A DNA stretch of 64,000 nt from Eutreptiella sp. 'Long Island Sound 2002' (GCA_964036045.1 OZ038379.1:15438001-15502000), one strand, 5' to 3'. Numbered from the stretch's first letter, positions 5,239-27,199 are shown. Program-made: numbers and translations. The notes: generated from the letters alone by a model not told the origin.

Positions 5239-5549
5239 CTAGTAGCCCCCCCACGACCGCATCTCCGCGGCCGCTTCGTCTTCAGAACTCGGGCTGGCCT
5301 CCCTGTCAGGCCCCACACTGAAGCTGGGGGGGCGAGCACTGGACTGGCATTGGGGGTCTGAAGTAGGGCTGGCAGCGTCGCCGCGCTCCAGGGCCAGCTC
5401 CACACTCGACAGCACCCCCCTGAGTTTGCTAACGTCCGTCGCCGGCAGCGCTTGGAACATGCGCTTGAACGGAATCATGCGCTTCTGCGTCCACTGCTGC
5501 AGCCGTTCCTTATCCCCTGAGACAATGGCGGCGAAAGGCACGTGAAGGA
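5239..5549 (-). CDS. trmJ: TrmJ/LasT-type tRNA methyltransferase, exon 4 (last)
   Basis: Acceptor gaacag|TC completes the phase-1 codon from exon 3. It translates as ...RMIPFKRMFQALPATDVSKLRGVLSSVELALERG..., matching the TrmJ C-terminal RRLF...LRGIL helix. Stop at 5241-5239. Confidence 0.8.
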
Positions 5550-6670
5550 CTGTTCAACAGGACGACAAACCCTCTCGTCGTCGACTTGTTGTGTGTTGGA
5601 TGGAGGAGGTGCAGTCATCCGGAGTGCAATCTGGTGGACCGCATGCCCCGATGCTGCGGCGGTGCAGTGTTTCTGCTGGCGTTCATTGAGCCTCAGTCCG
5701 TTTTTGTGCTGACCAGGCGCGCGGGCACACGTTGGAACGTGCTGCTAGTGTCAGATATCAGGTTGCATCTCCTGACGAGGGCCTATGGTACAGCACATGA
5801 GTCTCCGCTGTCAACCGTCAACTGTTGGGGTGTTGGATTTGGGGGGGGGGGGGGCATACCTGAGGACGTGTGCCAAAGCCCCTTCTGCCAAGATTCCACC
5901 ACAATCACACAGCAGCCTTTGTGCGTGTTGTAGGCAGCGCTGAACCTCCGCTCGCCTCTCTGCCCGCCCCCATGAAAAGGCGCGGCGGGAAGCGCATGGA
6001 GATCAGTTTGAGGCGCTTCGCTGCCAAACAACGGTGGTGCAGCGTCTTGATTGCTGGTATGGGTTGCGGGTGAAGAGGGCGGGTTCAAAAAACTGTGAGA
6101 GCAGGGTTTCTCGTATTTCCGTGGTAGTAGGGCTCAAAACCGGTCCGTGATTTTTCCGTGATTTCCATGGTGACCAAAAATCCTTCCGTTTGGCAAACAA
6201 CAGACAAAATGTACCAAGCAATGCAACATAACGACACAACAGCCAAAGAAGATTGCTGCAAAACATCATTGTTTGCAATCCTACAGAGAACCTGCCCTCA
6301 CGTCTCCATTGCAAAACATAGTTACAGCACATTGCCTCCTTTTGTGTCCAATGTTTTGTCTGTTCTTTGTATCAATCAATACAGCGAGGCTGAAAGGAAC
6401 CTTCCCCATTGCACACATCCACATCCACATTCACACCCACAAGTACATCCACACCCTCACCCACATCGCACCCATCCACACGTATGCTGACACCTACTGC
6501 CAAATTCTGAACTGCCCCCGTACATCACCGTCCGACCACTATACTGATGCAAGTGAAGACTGGCAACGCCCTTTGATTTATTGCCGCGGCCTCCAGCCCT
6601 TCTACCCACTGCCCTGCCCACTCCGGAGGTAAACCCGGACCGATACACCCAGACCCCCGAGCAGCACTAC

Positions 6671-6902
6671 CTTTACTCTTGCGATCCGGCTTAAAGAACT
6701 GCACACGCCACAGGACTCGCTCCAAGTGACTGTAGAAGTGCTCCAATTCAGCACATGTGACTTGCTCCGCAGTGCCCTTGGCAGAGGCTGCGGTCCCAAT
6801 TGTTAAGTGCCCAATGTTTGGTGCATCACCTGAGGCTAAAACGTGAAGTGCGTTCAAGGATTCGCCTGCAGACCGAACCGCACCAGCTTCAGAAACACGA
6901 AC
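6671..6902 (-). CDS. trmJ: TrmJ/LasT-type tRNA methyltransferase, exon 3
   Basis: AELEHFYSHLERVLWRVQFFKPD matches the TrmJ C-terminal domain (ELEGFYxHLExxLxxxGFL type). Donor is AAAG|GTAGTG. Acceptor ccccag|GTT gives 232 nt (phase 0 to 1). An alternative acceptor 18 nt upstream is possible. Confidence 0.8.
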
Positions 6903-6989
6903 CTGGGGTCCGTGCCCTGACTGGCTTATTGCAGCTGAGGAATCAATCCACCACACGGGTCTGGGCTGGGCCAGCAATGGAGGTTGCAA

Positions 6990-7112
6990 CGTGCATGGGG
7001 ACGTCGATGGGGAAGTCAATGAATGGGGACGTCAATGGGAAGTCGATGGGGAAATCATTGGGGGAAGTCGATGGGCCAGTCAATGGGGCCATCATCGGGG
7101 AATGGGGGGGGC
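6990..7112. repeat. Degenerate ~12-bp tandem repeat (gaagtcgatggg-like)
   Basis: Repeated gtcgatggggaa / gtcaatgggaa / gtcgatgggcca units. Confidence 0.75.
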
Positions 7113-7199
7113 GTTGGCCCCACAATACAATTCCCATCTAGCACACCAAAAAATGCCCTTCACTGGACACAAACAGGCCGTCCTTACAAGGGGACAGAG

Positions 7200-10100
7200 A
7201 GTTCTTCCGCACGCTTCAGCAGAAATCAAGCGCCGATCAGCAATTAAGGGCAGCGGTTGGCCGGTCCCTAACAGCATTTGGTGGCAGTGATCGTTAACCG
7301 ACCAAACTTGAGAGTAACCGCCAGTTGCTCAAGATGAATAAAGGCCAGTGACTGCACAGCTGTACTCCTGTCATTGCGGATATAGAAGTTGTATTTCACA
7401 AGAAGACCACCCTATCTGCTGCATGCCCCCCTCCGCCTCCCCCCCCCGGGCATTTCCCCTTCACCCCCCAGAAGCCCTGCGTAGGTGAGCTGATACCCAC
7501 AGAGATACCATCCACCAAGGCAGCGGGGCCCTTCTGAATTGCGAACAAGACTCCTGAAGATTTACTGAGGCAAAAGAGTCCCATGACCAAGAGGCCTATG
7601 CCCTGTTGACAAGGCACAGAGTTTCCTGTGAGGTGCTCATCGTCCTGCCTGTCCTGTTGCACTTGTTTCCATCCACAAGTGAATCTGCTCTATGGCAAAG
7701 CAGGCACCGCAGCACAGAGCCTTTCCCCAGTTCCAGTCCCTCTGAGTGTCGACTGTGAGATGAGGTCTGCTGTCCGAAGAGGATGGATTGTAACTCAGTG
7801 GCATCCACAGTCAGAGGCCCTTGATAGACCGAAATGCAAATGCAGATACAACAAGGACTCTCTCCCCTGTAGACCAGCAAATAAAGATATCGCCTTCCAA
7901 TGGTGCTGCCAGCAGCAAGTGCTCAAGGAGGCAACATGAAGCATGAGTGTACAAGGGGGACAAGCCATGAAGAATTGGAAGTGGAACAGAGCGTGCAGCA
8001 TATGTGCATGACGAATCCAACACATGGCAGACTATAGAGAATCGGAGAACATCTGTGATTTGCGTGCTCAGCTCCCTTGCCATGGGGTACTGTCCGATCA
8101 AGGGACCATCAGGGTCAGGTACTGTGCACCTCCACCCCAGCAGCGTTGATCACCTTCGGTTTTTGAAAAAGGGGCCGCCAAAATACCTGGCATCATCACG
8201 GGGGCCCTCGCTGCAAGTATCCTGTGGTGCGACACTTGGGGGAGGGGGGTCCAGGGCAAACACAGGTGAAGTGCAGAACCACTGTCAACCCGTGCACAGC
8301 AACACCCACCAACAATGGTCGTGTTGCGTTCGTGCCTTGCAGCCGGTCACGGCACTCAAGAAGCTTCGTGCAGCTGCGGTGCCCACAGGACATCTTGGGG
8401 GCTGCGCATGGCATTCAGCACGGGCAAAGTAGCTGCTTGGGGCACGCATCACACACTCAGCGCGCCTTCCGGGCAGCCTTGTGGTGCCAGGGTGCGTGCT
8501 CCCGTTGGCATGAGTCCTGTGAGCCTGAACACACCTCAGGACTCCTCCAGACATTACTTCTGGTGACCCCCCAGTGCACCCCAAGACGCAGCCATGAAGT
8601 GGGGGGACCTGCAGTGTCTCCCGCAGCATGAAGGACAGCCCCGCGGCTGGACGTTGTGCGGGTCTTGTTGTCAGCGCTGCTTAAGCCTGTGTCAGGCTGT
8701 GGCACTGCCACTGCTGCAGGCTCTATCCTGCGCTTCTTGAGGACGGGCTCCTGCACAATGAAGCGCAAATGGCAGATGGTGGGGGGGGGGTAAGAGATGG
8801 GGTGACATGTGTGTCTTCGCCCTATTGATCCAGGAGCTCGGAAGGTCCAAAGCAAGCATTCTCACCAATGACACAGCACAGCACAACACAGCAAGTTTTC
8901 TCCTCCTTTCACCTGGCACCAGCACAAACATGAAAACTCCGGCACACACAACTGTTGAAGTCCAGTCAGCACGTCATGCCACTCCGGCCTACGGCTGAGC
9001 AGCAAACAGTCACGCAGCTCCTCCAGCTTTGGCAACACAAACTTTCGGGAGGGTCGGTCATCCGAGGCATTTTGCTTAATGTAGTTGAGAATGAAACTGC
9101 ATTTCTCCTCATTTTTCGGTACTGTCCGTGCCTTATCAGAAGCCACAGACCGCCCCCCCTTCAGTGGACAACCTCAGTCACCAAGGTCTGCAACATCTCA
9201 GGCAAACCAATTTCTGAGCCTTCGCCCACCCCCTAGACTCCCGCAGCTCGTGTTGATATTTGAAAAGCAAAACCTGTGGCACTGCCCTGTCCCACATGCC
9301 CCCGTCCCACAGGCTTTTACTAAGTTCCACTTCTCCACACACTCCAAGGCCCTTTGCCACCACCGACACATCAACCTCTTCCAGGTGTTCCTCATGAGAG
9401 TAATAAGCATCCTCCTCTTCCTCCTCCTATCACTTCTCTGCCATGCTCGACAAACTCCACAAAACCACAGGGATAGTATCCAGGACCGTCTGACACGCCA
9501 CTTCATGAGCCGTTGACACCAACGACAAAGCTGCCTCTCCCAACCGAGCCTACAAACGTGGACTCACTATTTGCATGAAGTTTTCCACCACAGGTAAGAC
9601 ATCCAACTTCCGCGGCTCACGAACTTCTCCTCGAATCCATCCTACCCACCATGACAACATCAACCATGACCCATACGCAACCTCAAATCCTCCTTCTTTT
9701 CTGAGCACCGGCTTCCTGGGCCATGAGTGATATCCCCATGCATGCTTTTGCATGCTTTGATGTGGCATATGCCACCACCACTGCTCGTGTGCTCCAGCCT
9801 CCCACAAGTCCCTAGCCCCTGCTACCCAAGCTTGTGCCGCCCCACATCTCCTATGCCCATGCCATCGCGGCGCCAAATACAGTCCTCCTTCCACCGACGC
9901 CACCCATTAGGCTTCCAGCTCACTTGGGTTGCTGAAGTTGGATGCACAACTTGGGTCCGCTCTCCTCCTAATGCGCTCTTTGTGTAAGAATCTAGCCACC
10001 TTTGTGGCCAAGGCCCCACATCTTGGACATGCACACCTGGTCGATTTTTCTCTTCCCTGAACACTAGGCGATGCACTGCATCTCCGGCTACGAGAATGAC

Positions 10101-11000
10101 CTCCTAGATGATGTGACAATGCGCAAGATACGTGTTCCTCCTCTCTGTAAGCGTAGTTTCTCCCACGCTTTTGCAAACAGTTAGTCTAACTCCTTATCCA
10201 ATGGGGCAATGACCCTTGATTTCTCCGCCAACCGCAGCCTAGACATCCGCTTCTTTGCCGGCCCTTCAAAACCCCATTCCCTTGCCACTTGCAACATCGT
10301 GCCTTGCAAGGCCATCCTCAATGACAGCCATCCGTACAGCCCACTATATTTGATGAACGTGAGCAGCGCTCCGACGTACCCCTATCGCGTCCAACTTTCT
10401 AGTCTCCTCCATACCACCATTTCATAGGACGAGCCCATGGCATGTCCCTCTGTTGCCACAAATTCCTCCAATGCATTCCAGAGTTCAAATCTGGGAGTCA
10501 CTTACAGACGAGTTCCTAGGCATGAAAAGCCTAGTGTCTCTGATTGCAGTCACTGCAGGGCTTCGATGGTGGCGAGGAACAATCTTGCCACTGTCCATTC
10601 CTTATACGGAAATGCTTCTTCCCACTGATCCATTTGAACTCAAATTGGTCCGGCTTGGATCTCCTCCTCCCCACTTTCCCTTTTCCATTCCCTTTGTGGC
10701 TCCTTCCATCCGAAATCGGCATGTTGTCCGACGATGATGAGTCACTCGAAGACGACGAAGAACTTGATAAGCTGGGCGTCTAGGAATCCGAATCGCTCCA
10801 ATCCCGTCTACTCAATCCCTTTTTCTCCGCCTTTGTCGTGTTCTTCCTCTCCTTCTCCTCACGGTGCTTGGCTTTCTTCTTCTCCTTTTTTTGTTTCGCC
10901 TTCTCCTTTTGTCGCTTCACTTTCTCCTCCTCCTTATAATACCGGCGCCCCCGATCATCACAACGGAGCAGCGTCTCCAAGATCATGATTTCTACCTCAC
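7200..11000 (-). mobile_element. Decayed tyrosine-recombinase retrotransposon, VIPER/TATE-like (Gag - YR - RT - RNase H)
   Basis: Frame-disrupted minus-strand motifs occur in order. Lys/Ser-rich Gag-like region with CSDCNQRH (10.5-11 kb). YR core LVFREEKNRPG...GPW and box-II-like WHGHRRCGAA (~9.85-10.07 kb). DIRS-type RT start TVPKNEEKCSFILNYIKQN...KFVLPKLEEL (8.9-9.15 kb). GDIFIC at the YxDD position (~7.9 kb). ALN-ADR, resembling the RNase H NxAD motif (~7.24 kb). Confidence 0.6.
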
Positions 11001-11499
11001 TTAAAACATCTATCGAATTTCTCCGCCTATGCCGTCCCCCTAGAAAGCCGAAGGGCCTTCAAGTTTTGGAGACTTTGGTTTCGGAGACCAAGCCTCATAC
11101 AGGCATGTGCAAATGCTCTGGGGCAAGGTGTAGAAGAGACCCTTGGCGATGCATTTATTCAATCGCCACACAGATTGCAGATTGCGGGTGTGAACTGAAA
11201 GGAGGACACCACATGTCATGTCCTACGGAGCACTCTTGCCCACATATAAGGGGATTCGTGCATCTTTATAGATCACTGTGGGTTGGCTTGGAAATGTCCA
11301 TACCGTCCATTGGCAGTCCATGTGCCACCTTTATTGCAGGAACCCATTTTGTTTACTCGATAAAACTATGACCTCCCGAGATCGCGAAAAAATGCACCAA
11401 CACACAATTTGCCTAAAGAATATATTCATGTACCGCTGCCTCTCTTGAATCCAACTTAGGTCTCGCCGGAAAAACCGGCAACAAACAAAGCGGAGTGCC

Positions 11500-14200
11500 A
11501 TAACCGCCGTAATGCACCACGGCTCACAAGAGCACCACAATGGACCACACCAGATAACCACAGTGGCCACAGTGCCCCACCCCTCCCCTCCCTCGAGAAG
11601 GTGGGATAGAGGTCATTTGTTGCAAAACACGCCAATCATTATTCAAATCGCTGCACCATTGGGTGACCGGCATGGTCAACATGGAACAAAGCATAGCGGC
11701 AACGATCCCAATGAGCCATCCTGTGTAATCAACAACAAATTAGCAAAGCGACCCTTGCCTTTTGTGCCGGCAAATGTGGTATTACAAAAGCAATACACTT
11801 TCTACTGGGAGTGATGGCACACGGCGTAAGCGCTCTGATATGTGTCACGGCTCTGTGCGCTGCGCGCAAAGTGGTGGAAAAGAGTGGCCACATAATAGTC
11901 CCATATTTTCGCAAGCAGCAAAAGTGATGAGCATAGCACCCCAAGAATGAATGAAAGGCAAACTATTGACAAGGACAATCATGTAAAGATGGGCCAAAGC
12001 ATTGCTGTGTAGAACGCAAGAAGGCTGCTACGGGGGACCCCGCTTCAATATCCACTGTGCTATATAGGCAGCCGGGTGTGCAACACAAGACCCTTGACCG
12101 TTTGGATGGTGCATACAAATGCCCAAGGCATGAAGCTATGAAGTCATGCATGCGCTGGTGCATGGATCATGAGGTTGTTTCATATAGGGGCATAAGACAC
12201 GCGAAGTCCAGATGTTAGTAGTGGTGCACACGTCGCACATGGCGGTGCTGCCCTAGGCCTTGTGGAAAGCACGACAATATTGTCGCGAAATTGCACCAGG
12301 GACATTACTTGACCTGAAGATGCACGCAACACAAACTACCCTTGTGGTGATGTGGAGAGGGTTCCCGTCTGTCATGATGTTGCTTTCGCAAGATCAACAA
12401 ACAATATACAATATAAGTCAGTGGATTGTGCACTAAACGATCCACCCATGGGAAAGGCAAATAACCGTGTCCACACTTGGCCTATGGCGAGCAATACTTA
12501 TCCATACACACTGAAAAGGTGATGATTTGAACAAAATTTGCGTGACGATTAACTGAAAAATTGTAATGTGTGGCAATACTAGCCCTTTCCATAGATTTGC
12601 GTTATGGATGGACCGGCACATTTGTGTAGCGCACCACTGACGCTTGGTCTTCAGCCACTCTATGCTCTGTTCTAAATGTTTTACAACCGCTTTTGGATGT
12701 ACATTGTTAAAATGGTCCTTGCAATCCGCCTCTGCAATGTGGCTACAAAACCATCTGTAAAGCCACGCATACCATTCAGCGACATTGTGAATGCTTTGAT
12801 CGGGAATTCCTTGGGTCAACATGCGTAAAAAAACAACAAGAAAACACACAAGCAATAAAGTGCCAATAGTTGCAAGGAATAATGGGCCGGGCGATGGCAC
12901 AAATGGGGCACCAAGTTACAGCACATAGGTGTGGAGATTTGCCTCTCCCAACCAGGTAAAGTAGAGTGCCACGCGAGCATTTGCTAAGACCTGCCACCTC
13001 TGCTATGTTAAAAGGGCAAGCAGGCCCTGAAGCCCATTGGTTTTTCTACCCAATGGTTGAAATTTCTCGGCCAACTCAAATTCTTGCAGTTGGTGCCACA
13101 TCCAATTACGGCCAAAAGCCCCATGGGGCACCAGGGAATTCATCTAGGGAGCGCGGGCTTTCTTTTTTTTGGGGGGGGGTCGATAGAGCCTTGTGGCTAG
13201 ACCCCCCCCCAATAAAAAGGCTCAATTGATGGGCCTCCCAAAATCCTACCGAGGCGGACCCCCGGGCCCCAAGGGTGACCCAGGCCCAAAAATCAGCAAA
13301 AAATGGAAATGGGATTTTTGGAATCAGTGTGCCGAGGGGGTTCAAAAAAGTCATCATTTGCGATGTATTTGGCGAATTTTTTTGGACCATTGTCAATACT
13401 CAAAAACAATTTTGGGGGCCTTCGGCGCCCAAGTTCATGATAACCGATCAATGGTCCTGTCAATTGAGCCCTTTTCCCGAACCCCCCCCCCCCGATTTTG
13501 GGGGGCTCTATCGACACCCCCCCCCCTCCGGAAGTAAAAACCCGGGTCCCCCTACAACTTGAACCACTGGTACTTGGGATACCTGCTGCGCGATATACTG
13601 GGTTCAACATGTGATGTGTTTCGTGAAAAAAATGTGTGGGGCAACAAATCGTGGCATTGTTATGTGATGGGAACATGTACAAGATCCGTTTTTGAGCACC
13701 ATGGCAATAAGACAGAGGGTTTTGACCCGCCTCCCCCATGTCATTGCACTGCTACACATTGGCACCTCTAGGAAGCTAGGGACATGTCATTACAACAAGG
13801 ATATTTTGATTTGATGCCCATCAATCTTGTCTATCAAACTTGTCAATTGGGCTCAAAAGATCATCTTCCCATACATGGTATAGATGCATGCTCTCATGCA
13901 TCGGAGTGTGTGTGAGACAATTCATACAATGAAAATGCGAGATCGCAAGGCTTGACATTCCCATGATGCGCAAGGCACTTTGCGGAGAAGTTGTGTGACA
14001 ATGTGTGCCAAGTAGGGTTTCTTTGGTGCTATGAGATATGGAACACGTACACACACTAGCACAAACAGTGATATTTGTTGCTCACATGCAACATCAGCCT
14101 CTTTGCAAAGCTGCACCCCGTGCACAGTCATGGTCCGGTTTAGCGTGAGACAAATTGCGACGTGAGACAAAATACTTGCACCACTCTATGTGGTACCTTC
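11500..14200 (-). mobile_element. Decayed reverse-transcriptase element, possibly Penelope-like, interrupted by a repeat insertion (~12960-13555)
   Basis: Motifs resemble RT subdomains 1-2 (LYMFPSH...HMLNPVYRAAG, 13.6-13.7 kb), 3 (EADCKDHFNNVHPKAVV, ~12.7 kb) and 5 (LFVDL, ~12.4 kb). Many stops. Confidence 0.4.
12960..13555. repeat. Dispersed repeat with poly-G/C tracts and a ggcgccttcggcgcc-type hairpin
   Basis: Its hairpin (gggccttcggcgcc, ~13416) resembles those at ~995 and ~4328. It splits the RT-like frame. Confidence 0.5.
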
Positions 14201-14904
14201 TTGCATGGCTTTGTATAATCTATAGGGGGCGGAGGTCATTAATGGCCAAATGGCTATACTTACACTCCCATTCACAGTCTACAATAGCCTAGATAGTTTG
14301 CCCAAAAAAAAATAAAAGAGCACAATGCACCATTCTTCCAAATTAGCCCCCCACCCCATCCCTCTCCCACAAGCACTCAATGGTCCGATGGGGTGAAAAA
14401 CACATAAATGGGGTATTTGTCTATTATTGTCCTGAAACCTATGTAGAGAGGTCAAAGGGTTGGGTCAGTGGGCCAAGCATTAGTTCACACACCCATCTCC
14501 CCATACATGCCCCCCGCCTCTAGAGTATGGTGGCACAGAGGGACGAGCTAGCTGGGATTGAGTCTTGTCCAGATGGGTGCCCTCCATCCCTTGCTTGACA
14601 GCCTCACACACCCTTTCCGTACTCCCTTAGCTGCCACGCCCGGCGCCCCCGTAACCTGCTACGGCTTAGCACCCTAACCTCATCCCAGGGAGGGCCGAGG
14701 GACACAGACCCCACCCCCCCACACACTCCCCCAAGGTGGTACCAACCACGCAATGATGCCCCAACAGTGGGGCCCCGAGAGAGACTACAACCCGTCCCTC
14801 CAAGGCTAGATAGTAAAGCAGGCGCTCATGGGGGCGCCGCAGGGGGGATGAGGGGGGGTGTTGGAGCCAAGGGTGGTGGGTGGGGTGTTAGCACGGGCAC
14901 CATA

Positions 14905-14960
14905 GGAGGGACAAGGGGCATCAAGAGGGACAAGGGGCATCAAGAGGGACAAGGATCATT
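14905..14960. repeat. 19-bp tandem repeat (gagggacaaggggcatcaa) x ~2.6
   Basis: Direct inspection. Confidence 0.8.
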
Positions 14961-16026
14961 AGTAGGCATACCAGACCCGAAGGCCCCCGGGAAGAGGGGG
15001 GGGGGGGGCTCCTCCCTTGGACACCCCACCCCGAGGCTAGGCCAACCGGTTGGCCCTGTTGGACTAGCCAGACGGTATTCAGCAAGGCTTGCCCAGACTT
15101 GAGGATGGCGTAGGGCAAGCCAACAAGGGGTCAACAGAAAATTGCAGCTCCAACCACACGGCCCCATCATGCCGAATGCATAGACAAAGGTTGCTCTCCG
15201 CTTGCACAATGTCCACAGGGTCCCGCCCCCGCAACCTTTCATGGGGGGATTGAACCCCAAAAAGTCCCAGCTGTAAGAATAGTGGAAGTTGGTAGCTGCT
15301 ATTTGCGTAGTGGCCCCCCTCCCCCCATTCCTCACACACATGAGGGGCCAGTCCGGTAGTGTGCCCTACGGGCCCCCGGGACTAGCGGGGCAGCAGCGCC
15401 GCACCCGGGATTCATCCCAGGCAGGTCCCGGGGCAGGGAAGCGCTCTGCGCGCCCTGGGACCCCTCCACCTGCCAACGGCGCCCCAGGCCGTGGGAGTGT
15501 GGGACCCAGCTAGTACGGCGGCGCCACCTGTGCCATTTGGCAGTCAAGGAGCGCGGGTCCCCCCCAGTCGTGCCCAGCGCACACCCGTCCCCGTGCGTTT
15601 GCAGTCGTGGGACGGGCAGGCAGTGTGTCCCTGTGACATGGAGGTGGCGAGGCCCTGGCCCAATACTCCCCGGTGGGCTCAGCGTCAGGCTCCCATGGCC
15701 TCCCCACCGGGCCTGGAGCACCAGGCCACACTTACCCCCCACGCGCAAGGCCCCGCCCCCCTGCCCAGCCCACGCACACCGACACGCGCACACGCCCGCA
15801 CACACGCACGTGCCAGCACACACCCAGAGGGCTAGGCCTCAGTGGTAGCGAGGCCGGGCCCTGTCAACGCCGTCCAGCCGGAGCCCTGCCGCCGTAGAAC
15901 TACTCCGCCCCGACGGCCCCCTTGGACGGTTGCACCAACGTCGCCTGCCTCAGCTGCACGGACCATGCTGAGCACCCGAGACTACTATGAACACCACACA
16001 CCATATGCCTCCTCTCCTTCCTGCCC

Positions 16027-16962
16027 TTGACTGCCCACCCCAGCCATGCCCCACTCCTCGTTGCCACAGTCCGTCATCACACCCTTGGATTCGTCTTGCT
16101 GGCCTCCATGCATGTGCACCCCGACCTAGATTACCGGGGGCAGCGTGCCGTCCTCGTCAACCTCACCACCCTCGCCATCTACCTGCGTCCTGCGCTAGAG
16201 CTGATAGGGGGTGACTTCAACATGTCCATCACCGACCCCCGCTGGCCACTCGCCCCAGCGTGTCGCGCCCAGGGGTGTCTCCAACGTTATCGGTCAGCCC
16301 TCCCACCGCACACACCCACGCACTTCACGTCCACTAACGGCCGGCAGAGCGCCACTGCCATCGACCATATCTTTCTCCGGGGGGCACGATCTGTGCCAGG
16401 CGCCGATGTCCTCCCCGCTCCCACCCCCCATTGCCCTGTGCTGGCCACAGTGGAGCCCACGGAGGGCCTGGCCGACGTCCGCTCTTGGCGCCTCATCCGC
16501 TGGCGCAGCGCCGCAGAAGGGGCAGCGCCCCGGCTAGCGGCGCTCCTCGATGTGCTCTGGGGCTGGCTGACTATGCACCACCTCACCCCTAACGCCTTCC
16601 TGCAAGCTCTGTGGTCAGCAGCCCGCCACGTCATACCCCAGCCTCGCCCCATCGATCACGTGCTTCATGACCTCCGCACGCGCAGCCACCCTCGGACGGC
16701 CGAAGACATCGCAGACCTCCAGGCACTCCTCAGCGACACAGCGGCCCGCCACAGGCAAGAACGCCCAGACCAGGTACTCCGCCAGACCACGATCACCTCG
16801 GCCACCACGAGTGCCCCTCCAAGCCCCTCGCCCCGTACAGCCAGATCGAGCCGGATCGCGGCGTCGAGCTCCCCACGGCAACAGCCCGGCTGGCCGAAGT
16901 CACAGAGCAAGCGTCGGCCACGACCCGCCATCGCGGCCACACCATGGATGTCGACTTCCTGA
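16027..16962 (+). pseudogene. LINE ORF fragment: APE endonuclease domain and linker
   Basis: LIGGDFN and TAIDHIFLRG...TPHCPV are APE motifs. A frameshifted N-terminal TVA.NVACL lies at ~15930. Confidence 0.85.
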
Positions 16963-18446
16963 CTTCGGCCTTCGATCCCCTGAAGTGGACCCCCTTCTTC
17001 GACCCCATCCAGCACGTGCCAGCCAACCTGCTGGGCGACATGCTATTCCACGGTGTAGACCAGCGGGATCCCCGGGCCCGGGGCCTCTACAGCGTCCGAT
17101 CTGCGGCCGGCTCTCCCCTCCGGGAAGATGGCGTATGGACCTCGGTCACGAGAGCAGGGTCTCTCTTCGCGGGCCTGGACCAGTGCCCTCAAGCCCTCCT
17201 CCACCACCTCAGCCATGGTGGGGTCCAGGGAGTCCAGCACCACTTACAGCTCGTCGATTCAGGCTGCGACTCCCTGTCCTTGGACTCCGTGATGATGGGG
17301 ATAGACAAGAACAATCCGAACCCCCATCTTTTCAAGTCCCACCGCCCGGTCACCCTCACCTCACCCCTCACCCGCAGAGAATCGCGGTCCGTCCGCGACA
17401 TGCTCGTCCCCTCCCTGGAGATCTCCGGCCACCTCACCCCCGACACCTTCGCCTATCGAGCCGACCACCGGGCAGCCTTCCTCGCCCTCGCCTTCCGTGC
17501 CGCCTTCACCAGCAGCCTCGACCAGCATCGCACAGTGACCGTGACCGATTGGGACTCAGCGGACGCCTTCCTCCGGCAACAGCGCGAAGACTGCACCCCC
17601 CTCCACCGCCTCCCGTGGGACTTTGGGCCCTGGGCCCTGAAGTACTATGGCCGCCTGCGCATCCACCCCCTCACGGACGACGGCTTTGCCCCCCCCTACA
17701 GCACTGAAGAGGGGTGGAATCAGGGGGACAACCCCTCTAGGGACACTTACCAAACCGGCGAACTGGCTGTAGGTGGCTGCCTCCCCCTGTCCGAGAGCCT
17801 CCACGTGCCGCCGGACGCCACCGGCGTACCGATCAACACCCTCTCCTACTCAGACGACCGCCGCCTGCTTCACCCTGATCTGTCCGGCCTCGTTGAGCTC
17901 ACCCGCCTGTGTACCAGGGCCACGGTGGCCAAAGGCGGCTTGGTCCACATGGACAAGCTGCAGTTCTTCGCGTTTAGCGTGCAGAGTGGCACCCTCCGAC
18001 AGCGCACTCAACCAGTCCACTACTATAACACAGTCACCGCATCCTGCGCCCCCGCGGTCGGCGGCATCCCCCTCTCCCACGCGCTCCCACCGACCCCGGA
18101 CTACGCAAGCCTCGCCGAGGAAGTCCGGCGCCAGCGCCTGCGCATCTCGTCCACCCCAACCCACGTCCTCCTGGCGTTACGCACGCTGTGGACTTTCGTC
18201 CTCTCGCAGTTCGACTTCATCGCCTCAGGAGTAGCAATACCTCCCCACCACGTCCGCGACTTAGCGGTCCAGGCACGCCTCTACTACCGCACCGTTCTGG
18301 GCCTCCCCTGCTGGACGTCCCGGGCCCTGCAGTCCCTTCCCATGGTCCAGGGCGGGCCCGGCTGTCCTGACCTCACCCTGCGGGCAGCAGTGCGACTCCT
18401 CCTGACGTACACCCAGGCCTCCTTCTCCCGGAATCTACTGGCCTAG
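16944..18446 (+). pseudogene. LINE ORF fragment: reverse transcriptase
   Basis: KSHRPVTLTS (subdomain 2), FAYR (2a), DWDSADAF (3), GWNQGDNPS (4), LSYSDD (5), GGLVHMDK (6). Premature TAG at 18444-18446. Confidence 0.9.
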
Positions 18447-18573
18447 CGCTCCGCTCAGTATGTGAGCACGGCGCGCGTCCCAGGCAGAGAGGCGGAGCCC
18501 CTGGCGGCCGCCGCCGCAGCCCTCAGCGTGCAGGTCGTGGTCCGACCCAGGCGTTAGCGACCTGCAAGTCCAC

Positions 18574-19275
18574 GTGGATGGCGACCGCGAGGCCTTGATG
18601 GCCCAGCCGGCCCTCCTGCTGGCCACTAACGGGGCGCTCCGGCGGCGAGCCGGTGGTGGAGGCATTGTGTTCTATGCCCCTGGTGCAAGAGTGGTCCTGC
18701 GCGCGTGGTTCGGCTGCCTCGTGTGGGCCTCCCCTAGCTCCATGGAGTGGCTCGCCCGCTTGGACGCACTCGCCTTGCTGGATGGGTGGAAGGGTACTCT
18801 CCTCTCCGCCCTCGATGCCACGTCCGCCCTCTTCCGCTCCTACGCACGCCAGCCCCCCAAGTTCACCCTCCTTGACGCCCTGTGGCGCCACCTCATCCCC
18901 ACACTGCTGCACCTCGAAGCCCACCACGAGCTGTGGCTTCGCGCTCAGCACGATACCTCCGACCGTGACCTTTTGGCCTCCCTCAACAGCATGGCCCACT
19001 CCCTCGCCACCCGGGGAGCCCGCGCAGCCACCCCCTGGACGATTCCCTGCTGCCCCATCTCCACCGGCGCCTGGTACTGTTTCACTGTGGAGCCCTCCTC
19101 CTTGACCCCGATCTCGGCCTCGACGCAGCTTACCAAGCGGCAGCCGGTGCCACCTACTTCACGGCACGCCGCGAGACGTGTCTCCGCCCCGACAGAACCG
19201 ACTTCCTGGCGCTGCTGGAGAGCGATCAGCTGCCGACAGTGGCGGTCAAGCGCGCCTTCGCTTACCGCATCCTAG
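18574..19275 (+). pseudogene. LINE ORF fragment: RNase H domain
   Basis: LLATNGA (TDG with D->N), SSMEWLA (E), SALDATSA (D), WLRAQHD, SLNSMAHSLATRG (NxxAD with D->H). Confidence 0.75.
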
Positions 19276-20147
19276 AGTGGCAGCCACCGCCTGCCCTTGA
19301 CATCCCCATGGAGTGCCACTTCTGCGTGTTCACCCACCCCCAGCTGGCCCGCCACGTGCGCAGTCGCTACATGCCAGCATACCGGCGCCTCCTGTGGGCC
19401 CAGGCCATCGTCCTGCAGCCAATCCCTGCCACCCAGGGTAGGTATGTATGCCCTGACGGCACCCTGTACTCGTCAGCCGGACGCCCCCTCTTGCGGTGCA
19501 CGTGGGACGGCCTCTTCCTGGACACCGACGTCCTGCCCGACACCGTCACCCTGTCTGGCCTCTGGTACCCTGCCAACGGCACAGGCACTTCCCCACTGCT
19601 GCCCGTGAAGCGCCGCGCCGTCGTCCAACGCGTAGTCCAAGCCCTAGGGGCCGCGGTGCCAGACCTGCCGACCATCCTCAACGAATGGGCTACCCTGCAG
19701 CCCCACCTTCGACCCCCGCCGTGCACTCCGCCGCAGCCCCTCCCAGTGTCAGCGGACCGCTCTGGGGATAATCTAAATTGGGAATATTCTATACTTATGG
19801 CCTTACTGGTGCGCGGGCTGGTCAAGTGGCGCGTGCGCTGCTCGGGCCCCCTCCAGGTGGCCCTGCCCGTCGAACCAGATTGGCACCCGGCAGAAGCCAC
19901 TACCCTGGTGGCGGCACCGCCCGCGCGCCTGCCCTGGACACTGGCTCAGCTGGCAGACCTGTCCGCCCTGCGCTCCTCCGGGGGCTATGCCCTCCTCACA
20001 GGTGAATCACCTGGGAGCGCGGCGCTGGCTAGAGCCTATGCAGCCACACCCGATCCGGGGCTTGTGGCTCTACGTCAGCCCTGGGGTACCGCACGCTTGG
20101 CCCTTGCGCGGCGAGCTGCCGCCCACAGCATGAACTCTTGCCAGTAA
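19239..20147 (+). pseudogene. LINE ORF fragment: C-terminal region of unknown fold
   Basis: 302-aa GC3-rich ORF overlapping the RNase H fragment. No clear CCHC knuckle. Confidence 0.6.
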
Positions 20148-21699
20148 ACTTAGAGGCATCCCCCGCGTTGTGCCTGCTATGTGTGTGCCGCTTGACTTCC
20201 TGCCTGGTAGGACACCAGATGACCCCCCCCGAGAACCCCCCCCCCCCCCGGAACACCCCACCCCGAGAGAAACGGACGGGGAAGGGGGGCAACGTGAGAC
20301 CGAAGACCCAGAGCCCCGGCGCCCACGGCATGTGGGCTAGGCGCGGCCAGTCCGTGTGACCCGAAATGCGCTACCAGCAGCCAGGGCGCCGTGCCCCGCA
20401 CGCTCTGCACCCGGCGGCCCAGCCCACGCCCAGCCCGCGCGCGCGCCTACACACGAGACGACGGTATCTTCCGCCCACCAGCGCTTCGGTGGGGTCTGGT
20501 GGCTGTCGATAGTCCGCTCGGCCTTGGAAGCGGACAATCAGGTTGTTCAGCCTCGTGGTGGGGCAGGGAAGGACGCCCACACCCGAGGGCCTGCTCCTGC
20601 ATCAGGCCGCCAGCACAACCCAACCAACCCCCATTCCTCACCGCCCCAAGGGGAACAGCTTATGGGGCGGATAGACCAATGCCTCCTCCAGCCCCGCACC
20701 CATGAGAACCCGGTTGGCAGGTATGGTGGAGCCAAGGTCAAAGGGTTTGAACAGAAAGGCTAGATTTTTGCCAGCGCGTCGGCGGCTGACACAACGACCA
20801 CCTTGGAGGCCTCCGGCAGCCCCCATAGACCCAAGGGGTCCTGATGTAGCGATGCCCAATCCACGGTGGCCACCGGTGTTCCTCCCCACTTGCAGGGTGT
20901 CAATGGTGGCAGACCATGGGTGGCACCTCCACTAGTGCACTAATGACCGTTGTCAATGCCACGAACACCATTGCCACCGCCGCAGTGCCCACTGCTACGC
21001 ACAATTCCTGCGCTTCGACGGCCGTCGTAGCCGTCACGCTTGGGGCCGTGTCCTCATCGAGGGGTTAAGCCGCACCGCACCACCAGTCCGCAGTGCGCCA
21101 TAGGTGCCATATGGTCTCCACATGCCCGGGTAGAGGCACTCCTCACGCAACCCCAAGCACAAGGAGGATAGTCCATCACAGCCGCATTGTTACCCATTGC
21201 ATCATGCATAGTCAGTGCACTGGGCCACATCCAGAATACCCACCAACTCCGCCCACTGTGGCAATGCGGCAGCCAACAAAGGCGGGCATGAGCGAGTGTC
21301 CGCAGAGCCCAGCAGGTCCATCTAGGTCCATCTGGTGGGGAGGTTGATGGCCTCTATCCTCACTTGCCGTTGCTGATGGGAGCTCCCCAACAGGGTGCCG
21401 TAGGAGGGGAAATGCTGGCCCACACTCCATGTCCGCCACGGTAACCTCCGGCAGCCTACCGGCAATACAGCCCACCAACAGTGCTAGACTAGCGACCAGC
21501 AAGCACACCTGGCACATGTGTGCCCTCTATCAAGGCAGTCGGTGGCAGCGAGCCACTTCCTTGCCCACATTGGTGGTGCCACGCGCAACCCCAGGCCTCG
21601 CTGCAAGGGGCACCCTCGTAGGTGAGGCTAGTGCCGACCACGTCTTTACGTCTGCGAGGTTGATGTCAGCACCCACCGTGGCGGACCATGCAGTGCATG

Positions 21700-22797
21700 C
21701 AACCCCCCCCCAAATCGGCGAAGAAATCCCAACAAATCGGCGAACAAATCGGCGGACCGATTTTTCGGCAAAACAGGCTCCCAGTGCCCTGGATCTCAGT
21801 CCCAGACCCCTAACACACCTTCCTTATGGTTGCTCAATAGTTGCATTCATGTGGAAAGGTAAAATATCTCTCAAATTTCAAAAAAAAAATTTCGTCTCTC
21901 GGCCTCTACATGGTCCCTCCGCAGTAGTCTAGCATTGCACAGTGGTGGTCCAGTGGTATATGCCTAGCCACACACTTTTGCTGGCGTAGGTTCAATTCCC
22001 ACTGTTTACGGACCGGAATTTTTTGCATTTTTTTTTGCTTGTCTTCCTAAGCAAATTGGTCCTCCATGCACAAACAAAGCCTTCTGGAGGAAGATAAATG
22101 CACACAGGCTTCCCATTTGCATCCCATTGTGTGCTGGGTGGGTGTGCAGCACTGATTTGCAAGCATCTCTGGGTCTGTACACGGTCCCTGAGCAGATGTA
22201 TAGCAGTACAAGGCAGTGGTCCAGTGGTGTGCACTATGCACCCCTGGTTCACAGGCGTGGATTTAAACCCCACTGTTTACTGACCGGATTTTTTTTGCAT
22301 TTTTTTGCACTTGTCTTCCCGAGAAAATTGGTTTTCCATGCACAAACAGAAGAAGAGGAATTCACACAGGCTTCCCATTTGCACTGGGGCGTGCAGAGCA
22401 AACACATAAGTTGCAAACTGCCCCCTGAGCAGCATCAGGGTACTTGTCCCGCAGAAAAGTTTGATCACTGGGGGACAATGAATCCCAGGGGACCAGAGAT
22501 GTGTCTTTCTCTGGGCAGTAAAAACACTTCATGGTGCCAATCTGAAGAACCAATGTAGAAAGAAAAGTATTATCCAGTGTCCCAAAGTAAATGATGCACA
22601 TCTTAGGTTGACACGTCCAAATCAGGTGTCCTATAATCCCAGAAGCCTCAACAAGTCGGCACAACAAATGGGCAAAATCACAGAAACCCAAAGAATCGGC
22701 AAAACAAATCGGCGAAATTCAGAAAGCCAACAAATCGGCGGAACAAATCGGCGAGGTCGGCCGAATTTGGCCGCCGATTTGGGGGGGGGGGGGGTTG
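21700..22797. mobile_element. Non-autonomous TIR element (~1.1 kb) with a 6-bp target-site duplication, TGCATG
   Basis: Left end CAAC(C)nAAATCGGCG and right end CGCCGATTT(G)nTTG. TGCATG at 21694-21699 and 22798-22803. Subterminal aaatcggcg repeats. Confidence 0.8.
21935..22450 (+). repeat. Tandem dimer (~270-bp period) with tRNA-like (SINE-like) heads
   Basis: A-box-like TGGTCCAGTGGT in both units. B-box GGTTCAATTCCC at 21989-22000, and GGATTTAAACCCC in unit 2. Both are followed by actgtttac..gaccgg and T-rich runs. Confidence 0.65.
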
Positions 22798-23642
22798 TGC
22801 ATGGCACTGGGCCCATGGTTGGCAAGCAGCAACCATGCGAGCGCCCCATAGGAGGCTCCCACCCTGACATACATGGTTCTGGTATCAGCAAGAACAGTGA
22901 TACCATGTGTATGTTTCACAACAAATCACCTGGAAAAAATATACATGGGGTGTGATACATGCTTGCCATGTGGTTTTGGATCATTGTGGGTGGCCACAGT
23001 GTTAAAAAAAAAAAACTGAATCTGGAATTTTCGATTTTGCAACTGTTTTTAGCCCTAAAGACTCCTCCAGCAGGTGCCCCAGCCCTTGCCCATGAAACGC
23101 CCCATTTCACCCATCCAGTGGCCAGAAGGTGTTAAAAATGATTGAGAGCATTTTTTCTGGCATAAGGTGTGATCACCCCCAAGGGCATTGTTCTGTCCGA
23201 CACCCTGGGGGGGGGGGGTTCGTCCCTGGAAAGCATCATGGGGATGGGGGTAACACGTGGCCCCTTCTTGAGGTTCCCCAAGGTTACCATGATTTCAAGC
23301 ACATAGGGGGCATCTTCATGGTTTATGGGGGCCTCACCCCACTCCCAGGGTCCACCACGCTTTGATCACTGCGCCTGCGCACCTGTCCAGTGCCCGATTA
23401 CTTTCAAAATTGCTACTACTCCATTTAATTGGACTCGAAGGGGCCCACAGGAAAAGGATAGTACAATCGGGGGCTGATCATCAATTGTCGGCAGTTGGCA
23501 GTTACACATCGGCTGTTGAGGGTCAACGGCCAGCAGTTGGTGCTCTCCTTAACAACAAACACCACCGAAGTCGTCCCTTAAGCAACGCCCTGGGAGGCAC
23601 AGGTACGGCAGTGGCACGGCGGCTGTGCACAGAGGTGTGCAC

Positions 23643-23960
23643 CTGATCGCCACATTCTGCAGCAGCGCCCGCAACCCGGAACATGTCGTAGCAGCACACA
23701 GCGACCGCCTGCGCCAAGTTCAAGACCGGATAGGCCGGCGACGAGGGCACACAGAGGAAGCGCTGCGCTGTGCTCAGCTCCACGTTCGTGAGGCCGCGAT
23801 TCTCTGCGCCGAAGATCAGCGCCGCGGGGGCACCCGGGTCCCCGACGAGCCACGGCAGGGCCTCCGAGGGGCCCTGGAGGTCAGGGGTCGCCGATGTGCA
23901 CTTGTGCGTTGTGGCCACGACCCGCTTGCAGTCCTGCACGGCCTCAGAGAGGGTGCACAC
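23643..23960 (-). CDS. trmJ: TrmJ/LasT-type tRNA methyltransferase, exon 2 (SPOUT knot motifs)
   Basis: cattgcag|GTG...GATCAG|GTGCAC, 318 nt, phase 0. AALIFGAENRGLTNVEL and YPVLNLAQAVAVCCY are SPOUT SAM-binding motifs. Confidence 0.93.
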
Positions 23961-24509
23961 CTGCAATGCCCATGTGCCGGGGGCTGTTATGGTGGAGCGG
24001 ATCATGCGGAGGGAAACAGGGCTCACCCAGTTGCCCCGAGGCTGGGGCTGGGACCGGGTAAGAGCTGGGGCGGAGGCAGGGCCAGTGGCTGGGGCCACAG
24101 GCGAAGCGGGTGCACCCGGTGCTGAGGACAGTCCGGGGGAAGGGGATGGGCGAAGGAATCACATGGCATGTGCATGGACCAGGCCTGCACTGTGCCGGTT
24201 TGCGGGAGCGCCCAACCTCCGATGGATTGCCTTCGCCTTCTCGCGCAGTGCACACCGAATGGCTGGCCCCGCTTTACACGCCACCATTGGTGAATGCCGC
24301 TGCGGTGGCATTGAAGGGCTTCAGGCCCCGGGCTCCAGGGCAGGCCCTACTCAACATGTGGCAGGTTGTGCACTCCTGCTTTGGAGAGGGGCACTCGGGA
24401 AGGGCTGCTAAACTAAAAGGTGCCCCAGGAGCGTGGGGAGGGCCAATCTCGTAGCCTCCTTCGGGCCATAGGAAAGAACATGACTTGTGGCTCCAAATAC
24501 ACGGGCGTA

Positions 24510-25012
24510 CCCCCCCCCCCCTTGTCGTTCCCCACCCCAGGGAAGACGGTCCCCCACCACCCCCTGGGGGATGGTCACCAAGTGACGGTCCCCCACCCCC
24601 CCCCCTGGGGGACCACACCTCCACCGTACACGCACATTTGCAGGGACAAAAATTGCAGCATAAAACGAAAGAAGTCAGCATAGGATGCGTTCAAAGGGCT
24701 GCCAATGTACGGAGACCTACTCCTTGACCAGCTCGGTGTAAAATTTCTTGGTCCTGCTCCGCTTCACCTTGAACTCTTGCACATGCTCACCACTTTCCAC
24801 TGGAATGCTTTGGGCAGCACTCTTGGGTGGTGGTTTTGCCTTCCTGTCCTGCCATGAGTGCAAGGGATGCAAGTGGTAGTGCCCCACAACACAGTCACCC
24901 ACACAACAACACAATGAGCCGCAACGAAAAATTTGGGGTTGACCAAGTGACGGTCCCCCAGCCCCCCCCGGGGAACGACAAGGGGTGGGGAGCGACAAAG
25001 GGGGGGGGGGGG
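24510..25012. mobile_element. 503-bp MITE-like element with TA target-site duplication
   Basis: TA|(C)nTTGTCGTTCCCCA ... GGGGAGCGACAAA(G)n|TA. TA at 24508-24509 and 25013-25014. Confidence 0.7.
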
Positions 25013-26529
25013 TATCAGGGCTACACCCCACAAAAGAGCATGGATTGCGGCCAAATATCTGCTTTCGCATCCGGGCCCATCCGGGAATTTCATTGGTCCC
25101 CAAGGTAATTGATTGGTCCCCTTCACGAATGTCGTGGATCCCCCCCTATGAATTTCATTGGTCTGCTAAATGGATTTCATTGGTCCCCCGCCACTTTGAA
25201 GGAGATGTCTGAATTCTCTCAATGGGCGCACCAGTTCGGTCGGAGGGGGCCTTTCTGAGATAGGTCAGGTATGCAGGCCTCAGAAGTAATTGGACAACGT
25301 GGCCAGGAATGCACCACGCAATATACCCAGAATGTACCCAGGACCAGGAAAACCGGGACACATGAGGGGGGGGGGGGGGGGAGCTGGTGGGAACTGGGAA
25401 AATGGGATAGAGAAAACCCGATGAAATGGGGGGCACTTCTGATACTTCTGATACTCCGTTGGGATGATGCCACGTGGCGTGCCCTCAGGCCTCAGGTACT
25501 CTCCTGCTCGACCACCTTCGTCAAAGAACCCGCGGTGAGCCCCATCCGCAACGCCCACGCCACGGGCGCACCGCTCCTGCGCGGGCTGGTGGCCTCGAGG
25601 TCTGTGCCTGTCCCTTCGTGGTGGATGGGTGCGTGTGTATGTCGGTGTGCGGAATCGCACGGATGTTTGGGCGGCTTTCGGTATGTGGGGGCACCCTCCG
25701 TCCGTGGGGGGGGTAAGAGGTGCATCTGCAGCGGGGGTTGAGGGTGGGTGGGTGCAACTTCCCCCACAGGCAAATGACTCTCTTGCCTCCGGCGAAGTTG
25801 AACACGAGGGGTCATGAGGGTGTAGTGCACCCGCCTTGGAGCACTTTTTCCCGACCCCCAACCCCACGCTTTTCCCCGGCAGCCCAGGGCACGCCTCTGC
25901 CATCGTTTTGGCGCACGGTGTGCAAACCGATTCCGGTGGGAACCTCCAGCGCATATGAGAGCAGAAGCAATGTTCGGGGCATCGTGGAAATACGACTGCA
26001 TCCCTTCACGTCCCTCACCAGCACCAGGGCTCAGCTGCAGCCGGGGGGCTGGCGGATGGCTGCGAGCGGGGGAGGGGGCTGGTGTGCCTTCCCTGTGCCC
26101 CGCGCCCCTATGTGACGACTTGGCGGGGCTGGTCTTCCTTGTGCTCCACCTCTTCGTCAGGCGCTTCTGAGGGGGGGGGGGGGGGTGGCAGCGGTTCGTA
26201 GTCTTGCTCCTTCACAGGGGGCGGCATGATCGAAGTCCGACCGAACCGGAGGGGGTACTCTCGCCGGTCCGTGTCCGCAAATGGTCCCCACATTCCTTTC
26301 CTTTGCTTCTGACGTGGGAGAGGACGTGGATGCAGTGCCTTTCTCCTCCGCAGGCAGGAACTGGGTCCTTATGTGCACTGGCTGATCGGTCCCTATGATC
26401 ATGTCCACTTATGTGGTCTCACCTTCGAGCTTTGCCCGACCCCCATGTGGGTGTGGAGCTGAGCTTCTCTGGAGCTGACACAGGCCTGTGGCAACAGGAA
26501 CACACCCCAACAAAGCGCCAGGCAAGTAC

Positions 26530-26724
26530 CTGCCGTGCATTTTGCAGCACATCAAGGGCATGGCAGCTCATTTTCTCTGCTTCATCACCCAAAATGTCGC
26601 ACTGGCTGTTGACCACGCACAACTGCAAGATGCCAAAATTCTTCATGACGCGGGCTATCATCCCCACGTTCCATGGCCCTTGGGGCTCCACCAGTACAAT
26701 GCGGACATGCCCCAGGCCCTCCAT
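26530..26724 (-). CDS. trmJ: TrmJ/LasT-type tRNA methyltransferase, exon 1
   Basis: MEGLGHVRIVLVEPQGPWNVGMIARVMKNFG is SpoU motif 1. Donor CAG|GTACTT. The phase-0 join gives QNARQ|VCTLSEAV. Confidence 0.93.
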
Positions 26725-27199
26725 CGGACATCAACATGCACCCTGTCGACGGGACATCTGCAGAAGCAAGTGGTATGCCAGTTCGATGGTTCATTCATTT
26801 GCTGATGTATCAATGTGGCTGCAGGGCACACGGGCGGTTTTTTGCGATCAAATACAGTGTTTGTTGAGTCCATAGGGACACGGGGAATGCACATCATGGC
26901 AAGGCTACACTGAAAATGAGCAGTGAGGTGGCATGGTCCCATCACCTAAATACAGAATTACTGCCTTGTTGAATGGTCTTGCCCTCCAAAAATTAACATA
27001 GGACATCAATAGCCCTACCAAAATTGTCCAATTTGCCATTTTCTGCCTAGTTCGATGATCTTTTCGGCAAAATTCAGGAGAGTGCCACTGCACCTTTCCC
27101 CTCCCTTGGGGTCCAACGAGTGATTAAACTGGTAGCTTCATGTAGGCCTCACCCAGGCGCTGCCTTTGGAGGCTAAGCATCAAGGGTGATACACAGGCA

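Follow-up and report, generated by a model that had tools for sequence, protein, structure and literature searches.

The 64,000-nucleotide (nt) stretch of Eutreptiella sp. 'Long Island Sound 2002' analysed here (GCA_964036045.1 OZ038379.1:15438001-15502000; the window in what follows) carries, on its minus strand, what we take with a probability of about 0.8 to be one expressed nuclear euglenid gene for a SPOUT RNA 2'-O-methyltransferase of the TrmJ/YjtD family, with an ancestry in the cyanobacterial or plastid lineage. Its four exons total 1056 nt, corresponding to 351 codons and a stop, and join in phases 0, 0, and 1, as found by reading the sequence and by script. An earlier note on this DNA had put forward the four exons with their lengths and phases and GT-AG introns of 2.57, 16.74, and 1.12 kb, and its coordinates and arithmetic proved right when the minus strand was read again. 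The features of the gene, in window positions, are listed below.

26725-26758, minus strand: predicted trans-splice (spliced-leader) acceptor, with CAG at 26760-26758, and 5' untranslated region (UTR) of 33 nt
26724-26530, minus strand: exon 1, 195 nt, 65 codons, from ATG to CAG/GT; predicted N-terminal third of the SPOUT domain, with a conserved Arg at exon residue 25, in GMIARVMKNFG
23961-26529, minus strand: intron 1, 2569 nt, GT..AG
23960-23643, minus strand: exon 2, 318 nt, 106 codons, from AG/ to CAG/GT; predicted remainder of the SPOUT domain with the S-adenosylmethionine (SAM)-binding knot motifs ALIFGAENRGLTNVEL and YPVLNLAQAVAVCCY, and start of the linker
6903-23642, minus strand: intron 2, 16,740 nt, GT..AG; contains long plus-strand open reading frames (ORFs) at 16027-20147 and other repeats
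6902-6671, minus strand: exon 3, 232 nt, from AG/ to AAG/GT; predicted variable linker and first helix of the C-terminal extension domain (ELEHFYSHLERVLW...)
5550-6670, minus strand: intron 3, 1121 nt, GT..AG (1154 nt with the downstream acceptor at 5518-5517)
5549-5239, minus strand: exon 4, 311 nt including TAG, from AG/ to TAG, with an alternative start at 5516; predicted euglenid-specific insertion, the two closing helices of the C-terminal domain (KRMIPFKRMF...LRGVLSSVELAL), and an acidic/Ser-Pro tail that is not conserved

The gene is expressed, and its first splice can be read directly in RNA. Identical sequence is also present in an estuary metatranscriptome, in keeping with a marine euglenid. 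Contigs from three RNA-type runs (X1-X3) and one DNA run (X4) were placed on positions 22900-28800 of the window. The splice between exons 1 and 2 is present in contigs from two runs with 0 mismatches (X1 record 2 and X2 record 8): they cover 26528-26683 and 26528-26606, respectively, and then resume at 23958, the 2-base offset from 26530/23960 corresponding to a GT common to the start of intron 1 and the start of exon 2. Another contig, X1 record 1 (1,337 nt), fits the genome with its last 205 letters from 23846 down to 23642. Its fit stops there, and the predicted exon 2 donor (23643) is therefore used in RNA; the 1-base offset is a G common to the start of exon 3. The other 1,132 letters of this contig lie outside the examined stretch, and once the lengths of exons 3 and 4 are deducted, about 590 nt would remain for a 3' UTR, a figure that is arithmetic only. 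No RNA contig runs past the donor over 23491-23641. The contigs of the DNA run are colinear with the window across the introns, and one of them (X4 record 25) contains intron 1.

The 5' end of the transcript is likewise defined by two runs. X2 record 14 and X3 record 17 cease to fit the genome at 26758, beyond which they carry 8 and 6 extra letters, respectively. The sequence at this point, ...CTTCTGCAG followed directly by ATG, makes a good trans-splice acceptor, and the extra letters are probably part of a spliced leader. With the transcript boundary at 26758, 33 nt separate the acceptor from the main ATG. A coding exon upstream of exon 1 was considered and is ruled out: the ATG is preceded at 7-9 nt by an in-frame TGA, no AG occurs between the two, and the RNA starts at 26758. 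This TGA closes an upstream ORF of 8 codons (ATG at 26757, TGA at 26733-26731) that opens at the first base after the acceptor, shares the frame of the main ORF, and stops 6 nt short of its ATG; it may influence translation initiation.

The assignment to the TrmJ/YjtD subfamily rests on profile comparisons in which each exon or ORF was its own query. PF00588 (SpoU_methylase, cutoff 29.7) recognizes exon 1 with 44.5 bits (profile positions 2-57) and exon 2 with 48.8 bits (positions 63-142), both above cutoff. Among NCBIfam models, TIGR00050 (TrmJ/YjtD, COG0565) is the best for both, with 66.7 bits over positions 4-60 for exon 1 and 88.2 bits over positions 64-156 for exon 2; its cutoff is 167.15 bits and the exons were scored separately. 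Three relatives described below exceed this cutoff (P0005, 187.7 bits; P0087, 177.7 bits; P0002, 167.9 bits). For the remaining exons, a family profile was built for hhalign from the euglenid and cyanobacterial relatives. Residues 47-76 of exon 3 matched columns 193-222 (probability 93.4%, E 2.5e-7) and residues 21-62 of exon 4 matched columns 222-265 (probability 94%, E 1.4e-7), and exon 3 also gave a weak match to PRK15114 at positions 176-204. These consecutive columns would place a helical C-terminal extension after the SPOUT domain, as in TrmJ. The four exons thus match one family in order, on the same strand, and without overlap; chance ORFs would not be collinear in this way, and the ordered, non-overlapping matches therefore point to four pieces that are more than a chance assembly. 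The joins of exon 2 to exon 3 and of exon 3 to exon 4 are predicted from this homology.

Comparison with solved structures leads to the same family. Chains of the TrmJ type (E. coli, P. aeruginosa, Sulfolobus, HI0380) reach 92-118 bits with the euglenid profile, versus at most 29 bits for TrmL, and the full-length profile aligns with E. coli TrmJ as far as residue ~239 (180 bits). Exon 2 aligns to residues 65-168 of the E. coli enzyme (4xbo). The conserved Arg that HI0380 and S. acidocaldarius TrmJ have in motif 1 lines up with the Arg of GMIARVMKNFG, and the knot motifs FGAENRGL and LNLAQAV align with FGRERVGL and LNLAMAV of E. coli. The TrmJ-family identity claimed earlier is thus borne out by PF00588, by TIGR00050, and by the structural comparison. 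As for the likeness to LasT that was claimed with it, a LasT-like protein and a TrmJ-like protein are not separable here, as even cyanobacterial proteins fall short of the E. coli equivalog cutoffs. These are 280 bits for PRK15114 (TrmJ) and 212 bits for PRK10433 (LasT/YjtD), and neither is reached by exons 1 and 2 (25.7+44.7 bits and 36+58.4 bits, respectively) or by full-length euglenid and cyanobacterial relatives.

On this basis, the protein is predicted to be a SAM-dependent RNA 2'-O-methyltransferase. The knotted catalytic domain that binds SAM would come from exons 1 and 2, a variable hinge would begin at the end of exon 2 and take up most of exon 3, and the rest of exon 3 would supply, with exon 4, the C-terminal helical extension, the part of E. 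coli TrmJ that dimerises and aids tRNA binding. A homodimer would methylate a tRNA nucleotide at its ribose 2'-OH, with SAM as the methyl donor, as the solved relatives do. By analogy with these, the target is most likely position 32 in the anticodon loop, altered substrate recognition being a real possibility.

The closest relatives are found in other euglenids. A word search with exon 2 returned E. gracilis EG_transcript_34727 (P0002, 69% identity), a JGI protein (P0003, 66%), and a complete 276-aa protein of E. longa (P0005), followed only by cyanobacterial proteins at 50-60%. Exon 1 is 70-78% identical to P0002 and to the P0003 cDNA. The contig encoding P0003 (L001) is a JGI metatranscriptome cDNA of 1,206 nt, which opens with the euglenid spliced-leader sequence (...GTGTCTATTTTTTTTCG). 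The SPOUT part on it is accompanied by a C-terminal part, alignable to exons 3-4 but read in a different frame, so that in a close relative both parts are on one mRNA. Exon 4 can be aligned with P0005 as well. The two ORFs overlap in different frames in a C-rich stretch at 523-590 of this contig, and the frame change may be an assembly indel or a real one. An exhaustive profile search and cluster look-ups added a further protein (P0087), a homologue from the phagotrophic euglenid Jenningsia fusiforme, and homologues from three species of the red alga Galdieria (sulphuraria, phlegrea, and partita) and from the glaucophyte Gloeochaete wittrockiana. The Galdieria proteins are labelled 'tRNA/rRNA methyltransferase', and one is annotated as TrmJ in NCBI. 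The top match of the profile search, a JGI protein of 424 aa (P0247), was considered as a long euglenid form and rejected: it is a TrmJ from cyanobacteria in which ~170 residues are duplicated internally, most likely through an assembly artefact.

The euglenid proteins have in common a linker and an insertion of 9-20 residues before the second C-terminal helix, the latter specific to euglenids and containing a conserved Trp. The lineage-specific insertions noted earlier therefore stand as far as these two are concerned, while 11 additional codons may stem from the choice of the upstream acceptor of exon 4. A second in-frame acceptor is available there, an AG at 5518-5517 after a pyrimidine-rich tract, which would start the exon at 5516 and give a protein of 340 aa. 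With it, the protein reads KSK-GDKERLQQW, with a spacing equal to that of HTR-ADPERRRQW in L001, the closest cDNA relative; the acceptor at 5549 adds 11 residues without counterpart in the relatives. Judged by alignment, the acceptor before 5516 fits the relatives better than that before 5549, and the protein may have either length (351 or 340 aa). At 18 nt upstream of 6902 there is a further AG that keeps the frame and may serve exon 3 as its acceptor.

Two paralogue groups can be distinguished in euglenids. The gene described here belongs to group A, and P0087, of group B, is a 291-aa protein encoded without introns at L082 6001-6876 on a 327-kb eukaryotic ENA contig, in contrast to the 21.5-kb group A gene with its three introns. 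A reverse-transcriptase gene is located 3.7 kb upstream of P0087, which may be a retrogene. Its locus and the window have only one 136-bp repeat in common (90% identity). Two Logan ORFs from other assemblies (P0084 and P0085) read ...ALVFGAENRGLTNVELSHAQRFLC, which is E. gracilis-like, and then continue into unrelated sequence, a pattern suggestive of an intron, in another euglenid genome, at a place where exon 2 is uninterrupted here.

Outside euglenids and the few other eukaryotes named above, the affinity is cyanobacterial. When 185,579 prokaryote species were scanned, 80 loci came up, of which those at 44-57% identity are labelled cyanobacterial with two exceptions; non-cyanobacterial loci begin at ~40% (e.g. 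Shewanella, ~40%). The two exceptions, 'Actinomycetota bacterium MAG69' (L020) and 'Tatlockia sp.' (L026), are contigs of metagenome-assembled genomes (MAGs) and are the only named prokaryotic matches at 45-60% identity that are not called cyanobacterial. Each encodes a TrmJ of the typical cyanobacterial kind that shares 54-55% identity with exon 2. Both nest among cyanobacteria in a FastTree phylogeny, L026 also in the more careful tree; they are probably mis-binned. The careful tree was computed with IQ-TREE (LG+C20+F+G4, PMSF) from 72 rows and 274 columns, with exon 2 as the query row; it excluded the fragment of exon 1, 22 rows that were long or redundant, redundant cyanobacterial loci, and ~85 unnamed representatives, 30 of the 150 representative matches being named. 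The 65-aa exon 1 row was dropped as too short; it had fallen among long outgroup branches in a quick tree and with P0003 in FastTree. Cyanobacteria and eukaryotes form a clade with support 100/99, as do the six euglenid rows, among which exon 2 groups with P0002 and P0003. Gloeochaete and Galdieria are joined at 97/99, with a long-branch warning. The backbone among the cyanobacterial, euglenid, and Archaeplastida groups is a polytomy, and the bootstrap had not fully settled. When the nine eukaryote rows were held together, the log-likelihood was 6.5 above that of the free search (AU p 0.655). With this tree support and the AU result, cyanobacterial or plastid-lineage ancestry can be regarded as solid. 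The endosymbiotic or horizontal origin proposed earlier thus holds for the cyanobacterial ancestry, while transfer through an alga and direct transfer cannot be separated; the route through an alga is slightly favoured.

The likely place of action follows from the start of the protein. It begins 6 residues before the conserved VRIVLVEP strand, and four euglenid relatives begin at most 12 residues from the conserved RIVLVEP motif, so that the bipartite presequence (signal and transit peptide) of euglenid plastid-targeted proteins is not present. The earlier statement that no targeting presequence is visible agrees with the RNA start 33 nt before the ATG, with the in-frame TGA, and with these four relatives. 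As the mRNA starts this close to the ATG and the relatives have no extension, the protein most likely works outside the plastid, in the cytosol or the nucleus. The clade also includes a phagotroph that lacks a plastid (Jenningsia), and the gene was therefore probably acquired before the green plastid.

Several results weigh against a four-exon, cytosolic tRNA methyltransferase and have to be set against the alternatives that they favour. On the joins, the partner joined to the exon 2 donor was not seen among the contigs on 22900-28800; a metagenome-contig scan with exon 3 for a cDNA joining exons 2 and 3 gave 600 pattern matches and no relative; and transcript-derived peptides, sought by word search with the ORF of exon 3, were not found. 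The gene could then make mainly a short, SPOUT-only protein, its exons 1-2 being read into intron 2 or polyadenylated within it and exons 3-4 being relics or rarely used. P0002 of E. gracilis (172 aa) does end 2 residues past the position corresponding to the end of exon 2, P0003 (178 aa) ends a few residues past it, and read-through of exon 2 into the intron would give an ORF of 160 aa (P0001). These two transcript-derived proteins stop right behind the SPOUT domain, and a short isoform may thus exist. That the gene makes mainly such a protein is nevertheless very unlikely: X1 record 1 leaves the genome exactly at the GT donor and no RNA contig covers the adjoining intron, neither exon 3 nor exon 4 is degraded, both are in phase, and both have retained their match to the family profile, E. 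coli TrmJ requires its C-terminal domain (PMC4551947), and the stop of P0003 is the frame change within a cDNA that has both parts. On the substrate, the tRNA-binding residues of E. coli TrmJ are R82 and R84 together with K211, R213, R214, and R218 in its C-terminal helix (Liu et al., PMC4551947). R82 is Lys and R84 is Thr here in the alignment to 4xbo, the TrmJ-specific motif thus being changed, and the second Arg is missing in all euglenid relatives; the four C-terminal residues are P, K, R, and A in the profile alignment, so that two are kept, with extra K/R just upstream. Recognition of tRNA may thus differ, and because the equivalents of R84 and K211 are lost, position 32 is proposed as the target by analogy. 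The same fold could act on another RNA (another tRNA position, rRNA, or spliced-leader RNA or snRNA), with Nm32 left to cytosolic Trm7. Consistent with this are the losses just described, the insertion with its conserved Trp, the failure of any equivalog model to reach its cutoff, and the precedent of the E. coli paralogue LasT/YjtD, whose target is not known (PMC1829167). Yet the catalytic and SAM motifs and the two-domain layout are retained, the nearest prokaryotic relatives, which are cyanobacterial, keep R82/R84, and nothing points to any particular alternative, so that a different substrate appears unlikely. On the location, the absence of a presequence is no proof that the protein is cytosolic. 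The homologue of E. gracilis (EG_transcript_34727) is not in the plastid and mitochondrial proteome supplements examined. A plastid enzyme that enters the three-membrane plastid non-canonically or from an undetected upstream start, and makes Cm32/Um32 on plastid-encoded tRNAs, would suit the cyanobacterial ancestry expected of an endosymbiont-derived gene, the N-terminal extensions of the Archaeplastida homologues (~65 aa in Galdieria partita; the Gloeochaete homologue begins MAF...), which are consistent with plastid targeting, and the copy retained by E. longa, which still has a plastid. Such an enzyme is quite improbable in view of transcripts that begin 33 nt before the ATG with a stop in between, of the lack of an extension in 4/4 euglenid proteins with complete N-termini, of the clade member in plastid-lacking Jenningsia, and, as a weak point given that the files may be incomplete, of the missing entry in the E. 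gracilis plastid proteome preprint supplements.

The origin of the gene can be read in two ways as well. The gene may have passed directly from a cyanobacterium to a euglenid, e.g. from prey, in an event unrelated to an alga or a plastid. The clade member in a phagotroph without a plastid and the missing presequence would fit such a transfer, as would the free careful tree, in which euglenids and Archaeplastida are separate lineages within the unresolved cyanobacterial polytomy, and the lack of a green-algal homologue among the nameable matches (30/150 representatives). With so small a named fraction, though, green-algal homologues may have been missed; the tree that holds all eukaryotes together has the higher likelihood, and the quick tree and FastTree join euglenids with Galdieria at 87-91. 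A single eukaryote clade would imply spread via an alga, although the same picture could come from long-branch attraction. Direct transfer is thus possible but on the whole rather unlikely. A more specific history can also be proposed, in which a cyanobacterial-type TrmJ was gained before a permanent plastid, then duplicated, and now acts in the cytosol without an import signal. Pre-plastid acquisition would explain the presence of TrmJ in plastid-lacking phagotrophs, but the scenario as a whole is a tentative one that we consider doubtful. If true, a single-subunit bacterial Nm32 enzyme would act on nuclear-encoded tRNAs, beside or in place of Trm7-Trm732, and the changed tRNA-binding residues would reflect adaptation to eukaryotic tRNAs.

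A number of likenesses and differences with known systems can be noted. Bacterial TrmJ, the tRNA Cm32/Um32 enzyme (E. coli YfhQ/TrmJ, 4xbo and 4cnd; P. aeruginosa, 5gm8), has a similar layout of SPOUT domain, hinge, and C-terminal helices; these chains obtain 114-118 bits with the euglenid profile, and the window protein shows the motif 1 Arg along with the two knot motifs. By contrast, identity is only ~30-35%, R84 and K211 are replaced by Thr and Pro in the window protein, the hinge is longer, the 9-20 residue insertion is added, PRK15114 falls far under its cutoff, and the gene is a nuclear, spliced, eukaryotic one. The 'RNA methyltransferase' or TrmJ-YjtD proteins of cyanobacteria (e.g. 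Leptolyngbya, Microcoleaceae, Coleofasciculus) are the nearest in prokaryotes, with 45-60% identity over exon 2, the same 100/99 clade, and the same motifs in the C-terminal domain; unlike those of euglenids, they keep TTARxR and have YLYPHTAxSRMxKFRRLF without the euglenid insertion. The literature searched contained no experimental function for them. The homologues of Galdieria and Gloeochaete are likewise eukaryotic, nuclear, and of cyanobacterial type, and a single clade with euglenids is not rejected, but they have N-terminal extensions and keep the R..R motif. Finally, Trm7/FTSJ1 with Trm732/THADA, the usual cytosolic Nm32 system of eukaryotes, would make the same modification if the proposed target is right (PMC4033218), but it is an unrelated Rossmann-fold methyltransferase with a partner protein.

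In reviews, TrmJ figures as an enzyme of bacteria and archaea whose counterpart in eukaryotes is Trm7 (PMC4033218, PMC1829167). The earlier view of a prokaryotic enzyme present in a eukaryote is upheld for this locus but not as a unique case, given that Galdieria and Gloeochaete have TrmJ-type genes too. Databases already hold an annotated eukaryotic member, from Galdieria, and the enzyme family is known, so that the locus does not define a new type of system. Together with its relatives, it shows that red algae, a glaucophyte, and euglenids have a small TrmJ family with cyanobacterial ancestry; the euglenid enzyme, with no import signal and an occurrence in a plastid-lacking species, would have a modestly unusual location and history. 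Algal or cyanobacterial genes that were in euglenids before the green plastid have precedents, e.g. the cyanobacterial gnd (PMC2416651) and Rapaza (PMC10041101), and the present gene would be one more case. It also offers a concrete candidate for a bacterial-type Nm32 enzyme serving cytosolic tRNAs. In the literature searched, no paper linked TrmJ with plastids, and TrmJ and Euglena were mentioned together only in passing, in unrelated reviews; the supplement of an Arabidopsis tRNA-modification paper had no entry for a TrmJ/SpoU homologue.

The span of 21.5 kb is a matter of intron growth and not a property of the enzyme. Within intron 2, the plus-strand ORF chain at 16027-20147 comprises ORFs of 311, 500, 233, and 302 aa in DNA of 66-68% GC. 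Six long ORFs of this intron matched no Pfam family at E<=0.01, the sole hint being Exo_endo_phos (E 0.6), and an Rfam scan of window positions 1-30000 gave no match. Very high-copy repeats occupy ~24476-25066, within intron 1, and 28022-28800, upstream of the gene. Their summed contig depth in the DNA run exceeds 1e5, versus ~30 in the flanking single-copy DNA, and they show many rearranged joints and are also present in all three RNA-type runs.

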